55,979 nt of DNA from Octopus bimaculoides (lineage: Eukaryota). The notes below the pieces were generated by a model. That model worked only from the letters and a program-made list of their open reading frames with translations, had not been told where the DNA came from and did not search any database. The DNA is taken from contig NC_069000.1 of assembly GCF_001194135.2 (NCBI RefSeq), positions 672,425 through 728,403 on the forward strand, given 5' to 3'. Positions 32,101 through 55,979 of the stretch are shown here, piece after piece (the first letter of the stretch is position 1; every line of letters starts with the position of its first letter). The translations under genes and the position numbers were made by a program.

Positions 32101-35100
32101 TTATAAGTCTACTTGAACTAGGTTAAACAACAACATTGTATATTGTGTGAAATATTATATTGAAGAGAGGAAAAGATGGAAGGAGTTAAAAAGATTTATC
32201 TCATTTGTGAAAATATTTGTTCTTACCAGATTTCTTCACCGATTTTTTCTTTTAATTTTCTCTTAACCATTTTCTCTTCCCTCAGCATTCTGTGTCCTCT
32301 GCTACTCAATAATTGCTGCATTTTCACTTTTGAGTGGTGCTAAGAAATTACATACTCAACTCATTGCAAACATTATGCGATGTCCAATGAAATTCTTCGA
32401 CACTACACCTCTAGGTCGCATCATCAACCGATTCTCAAAAGACACTGACACAGTTGATATGGTTATACCAACAATTATACCACAAGTTATCCGTTCAATG
32501 TTCTTTATTGTCACCATAGTTGTCTTGATTTGTTATACAACTCCTACCTTTTTAGCTGCATTACTACCTCTCGTAGTTGTTTATTATTTAATACAGGTCA
32601 GTACCTTTTTTTGTCTCTGTCAACTCATATTAACAGGGAAGCTCCCGCTTCTGATGTCCTATATACAAATTAAGATTATTGTTGTTATGTTTATGTATTT
32701 ACTTTTTCAAACTTCCTGATGTGAAATTGTGTGTTGAAACAGTTATTGTTATATTTGGGGATAGTCACATTGTTTTGTCAGTTAAACACACACACTGTGT
32801 ACTTGGTCTTCACTTCAGCTTTGTTTTTATTCTTATATTACATGGGTAGTTTATCCTGTTCATGCTATATCATTAGTATTATCCTGTGTTTGAGAATAAA
32901 ATTATTTCCTTTCAATAAAGCTGAAGTGAAGACCAATATATAGGGCATGTGGTTAATTGGCAAAAAATATGACCATCCCCAAAAATAACAGTATTATTAT
33001 TGTTATTGAGCCCCAAGTGACCTCTCTCTGTGTTGATGGTCCCAAAGGTTTTTTTTTTTTTTACTTGTGGTTCATTTTGTTTATAAAATCTTAAAATATA
33101 TTTCAAAAATGTATCTATATACTTTGGCCCATAATAATTTAAACTGGAGAAAATTGTTAAGTATTCACTTTATTTAATAAACAAGGCTTCATATTTAGAA
33201 TTTCAAATCAGAATTTTATATTAACATTCCTAACAGTTATAAGATAAGATTTTAACCGTTCTTTGATTGAAACATCATTAAGGGAAGAGGGTTTAATGAG
33301 ATTAATACAATGAGTCCTCAAACAGTATTCAGTTGATTAAAATTATGTTAGACAACTGTGAAATCCAAATTAATTAAATGTTTGATCAGGGTATAAAGTA
33401 AGGAGTGAGTGTGGTCTTTGGTAAGTAGTGACAACTCTAGACATGTTTCAGTCTTATTAGATCTCCTCAGCAAAGTATAATTTTAACATTACGTGCCACA
33501 TCTTAGATGACAGAGATAAGAAGATATTGAATGAATGAATATTGATTTCAAACTCTAGCACAAGGCCAGCAATTTCGGGGAAAGATGTAAGTTGATTACA
33601 TCAATTGCAGTGTGCCACTGGTACGTATTTTATCAACCCTGAAAAGATGAGAGGCAAAGTCAACCTTGGCAGAATTTGAACTCAGAACATAAAGACAAAC
33701 AAAATACCACTAAGCATGTCTGCCAACATGCTAACAATTCTGCCAGCTCTCTCCCTTCAACCAATGAATATTGACTGGCAGACATGACATGTACATTATT
33801 TTGTAATTTGTTTTGTATTGTATTGATAATTGTGATTATTACCACATATTTGATTTGCTTTTTTGATGTATTATAAGAATAGTGTCTTGGGAAGATAATC
33901 TGTGTTTTGATCTATTCCAGAGATATTTTATACCAACTTCCCGGCAACTAAAACGTATCGAGTCTGTGAGTAATTCTCCCATATACAGTTTGTTTAGCGA
34001 GACTGTCCTTGGGGTCAACAGTATCCGAGCATATTGTATGCAGTCATACTTCATTAATCTCTTTGAAGATTTAATTAATGAAAATCTTCTTGCACTTTGC
34101 CTTCTGAAGGTTGTCAACAGGTAAACACAGTCCTGGCATATTCCATATTTCCTTTACCAGCACATCATTCCAGTGTTTTACTAATCTCTCTCTCTCTCTC
34201 TCTCTCTCTCTCTTTGCTATTACTGTCTCCCATTAAAGGCTATCTGTTCAGTCAGATTTTGGTCTAAACAATAACAGCAACCATTGCCTGCATATACATC
34301 AAAGCTTGCTTCCTCCTCCTCGTTGCCGACGTTGACATCATCATCATCATCATCATTAATACTTTGTCATTGAATCTAGATGGAAGTTCACTGAAGTGTT
34401 TAGTCATCTCTCAAGTCACAACAAGGTAATACTCAAACAGATGATACTTTCTTTAGAATGCAGATATAAACGTCTCTTTGAAAATCAAAGAAAAAAGAGG
34501 ATATCTATGGACAACTGCTTCAAAACCTGCAGCTTCTCTATCCAGGCTATGAATTCATATTCATACCAATAATAATTGGAGCACTAGGTTTTGTTAGTAA
34601 ATGCTTAAAGGAGACTCTGGATAAAGAGAAATTGACCAGCTGATTCATACATTACAAGTGCAATCTGTGAGTGGAACAATAAAAATATGCAAGACTTTTC
34701 TCAAGTTCCAAATTTTCTCAAGTTCCCAAAGATGGAGCCTTATATCTTTGTTGGAAACTGGCTCCCTCCTCAGTGGAAGATTTATAATAATCAAAAAAAT
34801 AGAAGAGACATACATGCTACTGACTTCTTTCAGTTTCCATCTGTCAAATCCACTCAAGGCTTTGGTTGTTCAGTGCTATAACGGAAGACACTTGCCAATG
34901 GTGCCATGCAATGGGACTGAACCTGGAACCATGTGGTTGGAAAGCAAACTTCTTACCACATAGTCATGTTTGCACCCATTCCATGCAGCCACAACCCATA
35001 CACACATACAATTATATTTATTTTTGCTTTTATTTCATAATAGTATCTTATAAGATAATTATAAAGTACAAAGACTTTCTTTTACATGTCTAAGACCAAA

Positions 35101-55700: not shown

Positions 55701-55979
55701 AGTTGGAATGTCCTTGATCATAGGTCTGCCTGCTCTATCAAGATTGACCTAGAATTAACCAACAGCAATAACAACATCAGCATTTCCACACACAAAAATT
55801 GAATACTTACACTGCAGAGCTCCAAAACCACCATAGACCCCCAGGTAGAACGTGGCACGATTTTCTGGAGCAATATTGAAAACAGCTGTGCCAGTGCCAT
55901 TAACATCAGTTTCATCCTCAGACCACCAGCTCAACCAGATACTGCTAAAGATAACAAAAACCTGGAAGGCGAAGTAGAA
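49677..55979 (-). CDS. ABCC1: ABCC copy B, TMD2 exons 21-25 (overall span, continues beyond the window)
   Basis: Five exons with the same lengths, phases and splice sites as copy A; no stops. Confidence 0.92.
51099..51219 (-). CDS. ABCC1: Copy B exon 24 (WLSIRIDLIGN…SYALS)
   Basis: 121 nt, attaag| and |gtaaga. Confidence 0.93.
52159..52358 (-). CDS. ABCC1: Copy B exon 23 ([20 protein letters not shown]…IINR)
   Basis: 200 nt, ttacag| and |gtaagc. Confidence 0.94.
53830..54140 (-). CDS. ABCC1: Copy B exon 22
   Basis: 311 nt, cctcag| and |gtcagt. Confidence 0.94.
55811..55979 (-). CDS. ABCC1: Copy B exon 21 (3' part)
   Basis: Visible 169 nt look identical to 49386-49554; |gtaagt donor. Confidence 0.93.

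Follow-up and report, generated by a model that had tools for sequence, protein, structure and literature searches.

Two TM14-17 modules of an MRP1-like transporter in Octopus bimaculoides: a probable tandem gene pair, homogenised in blocks and collapsed in the assembly

Duplicated genes can evolve in concert when gene conversion keeps sharply bounded tracts alike, as in the human pairs HBG1/HBG2 and RHD/RHCE and in the red and green opsin genes. Within the ABCC family of transporters, gene conversion occurs between human ABCC6 and its partial duplicates ABCC6P1 and ABCC6P2. A different kind of variation is found in Drosophila dMRP (CG6214), where splicing chooses between single alternative exons of one gene and alternative membrane-domain segments are combined with an otherwise constant MRP protein. 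The subject of the present analysis is a stretch of 55,979 nucleotides (nt) of Octopus bimaculoides, corresponding to 672,426-728,404 of CM046620.1 in our numbering and referred to as the window. It carries a gene for an MRP1-like transporter, in which the exons for transmembrane helices (TM) 14-17 are present in two versions, arm A and arm B.

The octopus locus has features in common with each of these systems. As in the HBG1/HBG2-type cases, converted blocks are closer within a species while unconverted parts group by orthology, and the borders of the tracts ignore exon borders, with synonymous and intron sites homogenised. Unlike those cases, the octopus pair has two long blocks, of about 7 kb and about 7.5 kb, alternating with two escaped regions. 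The escaped regions together make up the membrane domains of an ABC pump, and the borders are equal in two species. The likeness to ABCC6 lies in a segmental duplicate of an ABCC gene that stays near-identical and exchanges sequence; ABCC6P1 and ABCC6P2 are, however, truncated 5' pseudogenes, whereas Octopus sinensis has two complete genes and both pocket modules are constrained. Compared with the single exons of dMRP, the octopus alternatives would be modules of four exons belonging to two genes. A literature search on octopus ABCC paralogs found no paper.

Our preferred reading, to which we assign a probability of about 85%, is that the window contains gene 1 of a tandem MRP1-like pair plus the TM14-17 exons of gene 2, with conversion-kept blocks and in a collapsed, mis-scaffolded assembly. 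An old tandem duplication would have taken place before the split between O. bimaculoides and O. sinensis/O. vulgaris, probably after the split from Argonauta. Interlocus conversion would then have kept two blocks near-identical, synonymous sites and introns included. Block 1 would comprise nucleotide-binding domain 1 (NBD1), the linker, TM12-13 and the first half of exon 22, and block 2 the end of exon 25, NBD2 and the 3' end. The transmembrane domains TMD0/TMD1 and the TM14-17 region would have escaped conversion, leaving a protein identity of about 78%. The expected outcome is two pumps with essentially the same ATPase machinery and different membrane domains, the B type being conserved and ancestral-like and the A type derived and faster-changing. 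A short-read de Bruijn assembly with k=51 would have merged the near-identical blocks into single pieces (P5 and P4, described below) and left the arms as alternative branches, after which Hi-C scaffolding would have strung six pieces together in wrong order and orientation.

Gene identity and the two versions of exons 22-25

The window was analysed by self-comparison, exon models, tblastn and a search for 49-mers shared between the ends of its pieces. Exons for TMD0, TMD1, NBD1, TMD2 and NBD2 were found in that order once piece P5 was reinserted, and the precomputed Pfam domains of the O. bimaculoides and O. sinensis products are PF24357 (TMD0), PF00664 (twice) and PF00005 (twice). The gene is accordingly classed here as a predicted long ABCC, MRP1-like (ABCC1-like) full transporter. 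Cephalopod proteins were reached with a concatenated exon query of 926 amino acids; a module of 316 amino acids gave only distant hits (<=550 amino acids). The O. bimaculoides protein XP_052831215.1 (741 amino acids) matches exons 1-16, most of them at 92-100% in tblastn and at lower values where hits overrun exon ends. The stretches of CM046620.1 fetched for this protein and for a neighbouring model of 255 amino acids contain the sequence of the window; a 19,830-nt overlap that was compared has 0 mismatches.

Arm A is located on the plus strand and arm B on the minus strand. Exon 22 (311 nt) was found at 32286-32596 in A and 54140-53830 in B, exon 23 (200 nt) at 33921-34120 and 52358-52159, exon 24 (121 nt) at 35254-35374 and 51219-51099, and the visible 78 nt of exon 25 at 36624-36701 and 49754-49677. 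All four match in length and phase between the arms. Every visible exon is free of stop codons and has AG/GT at each visible border. The exon models thereby reproduce what a first-pass annotation, made from the letters of the sequence, had described as two sets of exons with equal lengths and phases and no stops. Two of its lengths needed correction, exon 23 having been given as 195 nt and exon 25 as complete at 78 nt. In O. sinensis exon 25 measures 102 nt and runs 24 nt further to a GT donor, and both copies in the window are cut 24 nt short, where their contigs stop in the middle of the exon. The remainder was looked for at the start of 36802-37732; it is absent there and falls in the gap.

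Exon 21, which encodes TM12-TM13, was identified by its AG/GT borders and translation at 49317-49554 on the plus strand (238 nt). A second copy, upstream of arm B on the minus strand and cut by the window end, comprises the last 169 nt of the exon and 22 nt of intron 21 (55789-55979), and is 100% identical to 49386-49576. The identity previously seen over 169 nt is confirmed and reaches into the intron. Position 55979 was at one stage taken as a contig end and the 191-nt overlap as one unitig; this was dropped, the sequence beyond the window being masked as N.

Differences between A and B were very unevenly spread over the exons. In exon 22, 2 of the first 181 nt differ and 40 of the last 130 (Fisher p = 5e-15); in exon 23, 9 of the first 174 nt differ and 14 of nt 175-193 (p = 4e-9). 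Exon 24 has 14 differences in 121 nt, and the 5 of exon 25 all fall within its first 28 nt, the last 50 nt being identical. All the counts reported initially were reproduced. At the protein level 39 of 237 residues differ. Exons 21-25 align with residues 958-1264 of human MRP1 (best PDB match 8vt4, E = 1.5e-69), in line with the earlier assignment of the modules to TM14-TM17, and divergence is strong in TM14-15, at the start of TM16 and in TM16 itself, and where TM17 begins.

The arms are alike in length (6.2 and 6.1 kb). Self-comparison of P3 (plus strand), the piece with arm A, and P6 (minus strand), the piece with arm B, gave blocks of 79-86% identity around the four exons. Introns are alignable only close to exons, which agrees with the statement that their middles do not align. 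The first 123 nt of P3 are 98.4% identical between the arms, about 190 nt of the intron upstream of exon 22 are about 95% identical, and a stretch of approximately 370 nt spanning the beginning of exon 22 is about 97% identical and contains private indels.

The gene pair of O. sinensis and concerted evolution of two blocks

In O. sinensis, the 159 kb fetched from CM016876.1 are free of N and hold two complete genes in tandem on the same strand. Gene 2 (73 kb) comes first, and 5.7 kb separate its end from gene 1 (60 kb) downstream. Gene 2 corresponds to XP_029647334 (1536 amino acids), a protein with a 'type 2' N-terminal half and B-type TM14-17. Gene 1 corresponds to XP_036366961 (1494 amino acids; also XP_029647335), a protein with A-type TM14-17 and a 'type 1' N-terminal half like that encoded by P2 of the window. 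Both types are also present in O. vulgaris protein models.

Each arm of the window pairs with a different gene of O. sinensis. Arm A is 90.0% identical to the gene 1 arm over 5,477 nt and 81.4% to the gene 2 arm over 1,439 nt, whereas arm B is 91.6% identical to the gene 2 arm over 5,179 nt and 79.5% to the gene 1 arm over 1,553 nt, i.e. 79-81% crosswise. Protein identity per exon to XP_029647334 is 86-96% for arm B and 72-80% for arm A. P2, with the 5' half of the gene, is 86.5% identical to the gene 1 5' half over 23 kb and 79.4% to gene 2 over 5.4 kb. The pieces P5 and P4 are equally close to gene 1 and gene 2, with identities of 89.6/88.9% and 85.7/85.4%, respectively.

Comparison of the two O. 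sinensis genes with each other gave 98.1% identity for the NBD1-linker block (5,007 nt, with its introns) and 95.8% around exon 21. From the last third of exon 25 the genes are again near-identical for about 4.7 kb (95.8% over 3,525 nt and 98.4% over 1,196 nt), and the remaining 1.2 kb up to the 3' end are 92.3% identical. The arms of the two genes can be aligned only near exons, at 79-86%, and the 5' halves only patchily. Expressed as protein identity between the paralogs, TMD0-TMD1 is at 78.3%, NBD1 to the loop before TM14 at 98.1%, TM14-17 at 77.3% and NBD2 at 100%.

The homogenised blocks are 95.8-98.4% identical between paralogs within O. sinensis over 9.7 kb, compared with 85-90% for the window copy against either of them, so that paralogs within the species are closer than orthologs between species. 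Because the blocks are closer within O. sinensis than to O. bimaculoides while the arms pair by orthology, the blocks appear to have been homogenised after the species split. The contrast of identities within and between species thus supports classic interlocus gene conversion, and we infer that conversion, not a recent partial re-duplication, was the homogenising process. Going by the O. sinensis locus and the forked piece ends described below, two physical copies of the homogenised blocks would be expected in O. bimaculoides too.

The border of the first block is sharp. Over the first 177 nt of exon 22, synonymous divergence (dS) between A and B amounts to 0-0.05; over the 132 nt that follow it rises to 1.1-1.3, in both species. 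This break inside exon 22 is at the same place in O. bimaculoides and O. sinensis and is independent of the exon border. In the diverged codons, dS is 0.62-0.72 between A and B vs 0.07-0.10 between orthologs, a 6-10x difference.

Among the models proposed in the first-pass annotation was one of paralogs homogenised by conversion except at the substrate pocket. The O. sinensis locus, the orthology of the arms and the dS values support it, but it needs amending in two respects: divergence in the N-terminal half is as great as in the pocket module, and A and B do not lie between the same physical flanks. The accompanying image of a constant body with a swappable pocket was overstated, as TMD0/TMD1 are as diverged as TM14-17 and nothing is swapped. 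Near-identical flanks had also been claimed. They are borne out by the O. sinensis blocks (96-98%), while in the window itself flank identity is visible only over 191 + 123 nt upstream and 50 nt downstream.

Order of the pieces in the window and alternative explanations

The window contains 29 runs of N, which separate 30 contigs. Five of the 29 runs are exactly 100 N long (4867-4966, 30373-30472, 36702-36801, 43292-43391 and 49577-49676; no strand) and divide the window into six pieces, P1-P6; at each of these scaffold joins a flanking 49-mer recurs at another 100-N gap, and all five joins fall where paralog-specific and paralog-shared sequence meet. P2 (4967-30372, plus strand) consists of intergenic DNA and the gene 1-specific 5' half with exons 1-13 (8074-30004), which according to tblastn with XP_052831215.1 and the O. 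sinensis proteins encode TMD0, the lasso, TMD1 and the start of NBD1 ('type 1'). P3 (30473-36701, plus strand) is arm A, the gene 1-specific TM14-17 module with exons 22-25. P4 (36802-43291, plus strand) is the collapsed copy of shared block 2 and holds intron 25 and the NBD2 exons, with part of exon 26 at 37966-~38022, further exons at 39223-39372 and ~40649-40819, and the last exon at ~43058-~43186. P5 (43392-49576, plus strand) is the collapsed copy of shared block 1 with exons 14-21 for NBD1, linker and TM12-13, positioned at 43600, 44236, 44881, 45557, 46090, 46823, 48315 and 49317; the exon with the NBD1 Walker A motif is 44236-44382. P6 (49677-55979, minus strand) contains arm B, the gene 2-specific TM14-17 module (49677-55780), and the exon 21 copy. 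P1 (1-4866, minus strand) is in reverse complement the DNA just downstream of gene 1, and aligns with O. sinensis 154525->148788. Its last 49-mer is the reverse complement of 43243-43291, the end of P4. In the deposited scaffold P1 is thus inverted and on the wrong side of gene 1.

Exon content and shared 49-mers give the natural order P2, P5, A or B, P4 and the reverse complement of P1, that is, exons 1-13, 14-21, 22-25 (either arm) and 26-30. The last 49 nt of P2 (30324-30372) are the first 49 nt of P5, and from this shared 49-mer and the exon content P5 fits between P2 and P3, in place of the 100 N at 30373-30472. The end of P5 is 8 nt short of the position homologous to the start of P3, and P3 and P6 finish on the same 50 nt. 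The contig of P3 begins exactly 50 nt before the first A/B difference and stops exactly 50 nt after the last, which places these differences at contig position 51 and at position 51 from the end; B ends at the same homologous base. Such offsets are the signature of a k=51 de Bruijn graph, in which A and B form two branches flanked by sequence that the assembly kept only once. For a collapsed repeat, contig ends are expected k-1 from a copy-specific base and neighbouring pieces are expected to have (k-2)-mers in common; 49-mers are indeed shared at all five 100-N joins.

The O. sinensis genes allow these borders to be calibrated. The P2-P5 break is no more than a few bases away from where the O. 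sinensis genes turn identical, and P4 ends about 36 nt, within one k-mer, beyond the point where their identity ends. The four internal piece borders are switches between paralog-specific and paralog-shared sequence, exactly as a collapsed duplicate predicts. Collapsed paralogs in other short-read de Bruijn assemblies that were afterwards mis-scaffolded by proximity ligation likewise show breaks within one k-mer of divergence, shared parts present once and fragmented, and copy-specific parts in arbitrary order and orientation, and the octopus case differs in nothing. The chromosome assembly of O. bimaculoides was made by integrating Hi-C data with an earlier shotgun assembly (PMC9068888), and this short-read base of CM046620.1 fits 100-N joins laid over k-mer contigs. 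A collapsed and mis-scaffolded assembly of this kind accounts for the inverted position of B, for the stray copy of exon 21 and for there being only one set of flanks.

Some further observations concern the pieces themselves. Relative to O. sinensis about 153 nt are missing at the gap 36702-36801, and the order and orientation into 36802-43291 are colinear. The smaller gaps within 36802-43291 are colinear as well and hide part of exon 26 and the signature/Walker B exons. P4 is broken into 12 contigs and P5 into 11, while P2 has a contig of 17.8 kb. The same 49-mer stands on both sides of five 10-N gaps (39952-39961, 40537-40546, 41000-41009, 44567-44576 and 47899-47908), where the contigs truly overlap and 49 nt are written twice each; all five are in P4/P5 and none in P1-P2. 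In intron 20 of P5, 48624-49198 aligns with O. sinensis gene 2 (65923-66461, joined coordinates) and not with gene 1, where the alignment between the paralogs is broken for about 1.7 kb. The shared block is therefore not uniform, and the collapsed P5 may be a mixture of both copies. A repeat of about 250-580 nt occurs twice in P2 (6300-6880 and 9103-9490, 76% identity between copies); many copies of this family are found over the two-gene locus of O. sinensis, and it is probably an interspersed element. RefSeq splits the locus into three broken models, at ~8074-45066, 46090-49576 and 49677-53609. The first, XP_052831215.1, ends 2 codons into the intron before the gap at 45103, a model of 255 amino acids consists of the linker and exon 21 followed by junk, and a minus-strand model of 234 amino acids represents arm B.

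The equal lengths and phases of the A and B exons are also what would be expected if either module could be placed on transcripts from one promoter, by mutually exclusive splicing or by read-through of a tandem pair combined with splicing. O. vulgaris offers a model of this kind: in CAI9738034 the A module is combined with an N-terminal half of type 2, and the B module is found in CAI9738035/36, in an annotation that merged Iso-Seq and short-read models with PASA (PMC10700109). We nevertheless regard such a choice as very unlikely. In O. sinensis the alternatives are not in tandem inside one gene; each arm sits in a separate, complete gene that has a full set of exons 1-21 and 26-30, and between the two genes the exons from NBD1 to exon 21 differ slightly while NBD2 is identical in protein. 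The internal cassette put forward in the first-pass annotation is abandoned for the same reason, each O. sinensis arm having its own TMD0/TMD1, NBD1, exon 21 and NBD2. Moreover, CAI9738034 (GCA_951406725.2) has a gene range of 136.6 kb, equal to the combined length of both tandem genes, and would skip about 30 exons. A chimeric model is likelier than real read-through, because exons 14-21 are nearly identical in the two genes and invite mis-mapping. As for the inverted B in the window, a scaffolding artefact is no evidence for any arrangement. An explanation by ancient, hyper-divergent alleles of one locus, with a haplotig laid beside its partner by Hi-C, was given serious consideration from the bubble topology alone. 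The arms do form a bubble of similar lengths between shared sequence, the rest of the gene is present once in the window, and B is oddly placed and oriented. This reading, also among the earlier proposals, was dropped on the O. sinensis locus and now has next to no credibility: the two types are separate tandem loci in O. sinensis and are both represented among the O. vulgaris models, the two window arms have their orthologs in different genes, and dS between A and B is 6-10x that between species. The forks at P2-P5 and between P4 and the reverse complement of P1 fit a collapsed duplicate with two sets of outer neighbours, and would not be expected from a simple heterozygous bubble.

Two further explanations accept a duplication and differ in what became of it. 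Arm B could be a relic of a decayed gene 2, i.e. a partial duplicate, so that O. bimaculoides would have no working second transporter. Protein searches, apparently filtered by length, yielded no type-2 N-terminal half from O. bimaculoides, and arm B is annotated only as the 234-residue fragment. The four B exons are open, however, with intact splice sites, and have been under strong purifying selection since the split from O. sinensis (6 nonsynonymous (N) and 19 synonymous (S) differences, dN/dS 0.09), and the broken annotation is accounted for by the collapsed assembly; we hold this decay to be highly improbable. It is scarcely plausible that the identical flanks are purely an assembly chimera and that gene 2 is diverged from gene 1 along its whole length, a case foreseen in the first-pass annotation. 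Flank identity in the window is indeed given by construction, one collapsed sequence serving both arms. In the gap-free O. sinensis sequence, on the other hand, the genes are separately assembled and 96-98%, not 100%, identical over 5.0 kb + 4.7 kb, and in the window the B-specific sequence near the shared part is 98.4% like A over 123 nt and about 97% over the ~370 nt with private indels around the start of exon 22.

Several points weigh against a converted and collapsed gene pair. In O. bimaculoides neither the 5' half of gene 2 nor a second copy of the shared blocks belonging to it was seen, the sequence beyond the window being masked, and the protein search with a type-2 N-terminal half found only the type-1 O. 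bimaculoides protein in what was apparently a length-filtered search. Identity of flanks in two copies is visible in O. bimaculoides for only about 360 nt, and the contrasts in dN/dS are built on small counts. The O. vulgaris hybrid of a type-2 N-terminal half and an A module would, if real, blur the picture of two genes. Homogenisation may also have occurred by repeated unequal crossing-over instead of conversion. We nevertheless infer a complete two-gene layout in O. bimaculoides as in O. sinensis. The remainder of gene 2 is expected since the B exons are intact and constrained, the piece ends fork, and the O. sinensis locus has both genes, as does O. vulgaris by its 136.6-kb model.

Differences between the two pumps and their meaning

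Residues of TMD2 that line the pocket of human ABCC1 are E1089, M1093, R1197, Y1243, W1246, R1249 and M1250 (PMC12647609). A total of 22 differences between A and B are fixed over O. bimaculoides, O. sinensis and O. vulgaris, and in human numbering the fixed sites are at 1091-1104 in TM14, 1114-1123 in TM15, 1190-1216 in TM16 and 1238 in TM17, with two more at positions 1136 and 1148. As in the human and bovine MRP1 structures (8vt4, 5uj9), with which exons 21-25 align, the equivalents of R1197 and W1246 are kept, and they are conserved in both types. Unlike the human and bovine proteins, the octopus modules have Gln at the M1093 equivalent in both types, and the Y1243 equivalent, encoded in exon 25, is Phe in B of all three Octopus species and Asp/Asn/Asn in A. 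The E1089 equivalent is unlike between the types, and that of R1249 is Cys only in A of O. bimaculoides. The two pumps would be expected to differ in substrate range.

The two modules have also changed at different rates. Between O. bimaculoides and O. sinensis, exons 22-25 of B differ by 6N/19S as given above, with a dN/dS of 0.085 in the diverged codons, whereas those of A differ by 23N/13S, giving a dN/dS of 0.53 and of 0.90 in the diverged codons. The N/S contrast between A and B has p = 0.004. On these small counts, the sequences indicate that B is under strong constraint and that A is relaxed or diversifying.

Argonauta hians provides an outgroup. Of the 22 fixed sites, 14 agree with B in this species and 2 with A, and its N-terminal half is nearer type 2. 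Because Argonauta hians shares the B states and the type-2-like N-terminal half, B is the ancestral-like form. No A-type Argonauta protein was present among the protein search matches, which weakly suggests a duplication younger than the split between Argonauta and Octopus. The Argonauta hians proteins GAB1603326.1 and GAB1610492.1 are both B-like and type-2-like, are >90% identical to each other, and are encoded on separate contigs of 10.5 Mb and 2.6 Mb.

The reference assembly of O. bimaculoides is in error here, with one gene split into three models, a neighbouring gene mostly missing, and pieces misordered and inverted. Caution is called for where ABC transporters are counted, or 'inverted duplications' read, from this assembly. 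A more far-reaching idea is that the tandem pair acts as a combinatorial system, in which read-through and long-range splicing produce hybrid pumps, for instance with a type-2 N-terminal half and an A pocket, the combination annotated in O. vulgaris. We consider this very unlikely; if it were true, the identity of exons 14-21 and 26-30 kept by conversion would keep the modules interchangeable.

The octopus pair is ordinary gene-family evolution and a tidy new example of it, and the mechanism is not new. It is a clean case of region-specific concerted evolution in a drug/xenobiotic pump, with the same borders in two species. The ATPase blocks are 98-100% identical, and both membrane-domain halves, which form the substrate pathway, are about 22% apart. 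With one copy conserved (dN/dS ~0.09) and the other changing fast (0.5-0.9), the two genes are a natural pair for finding the TMD residues that set the substrate range of MRP1-like transporters.

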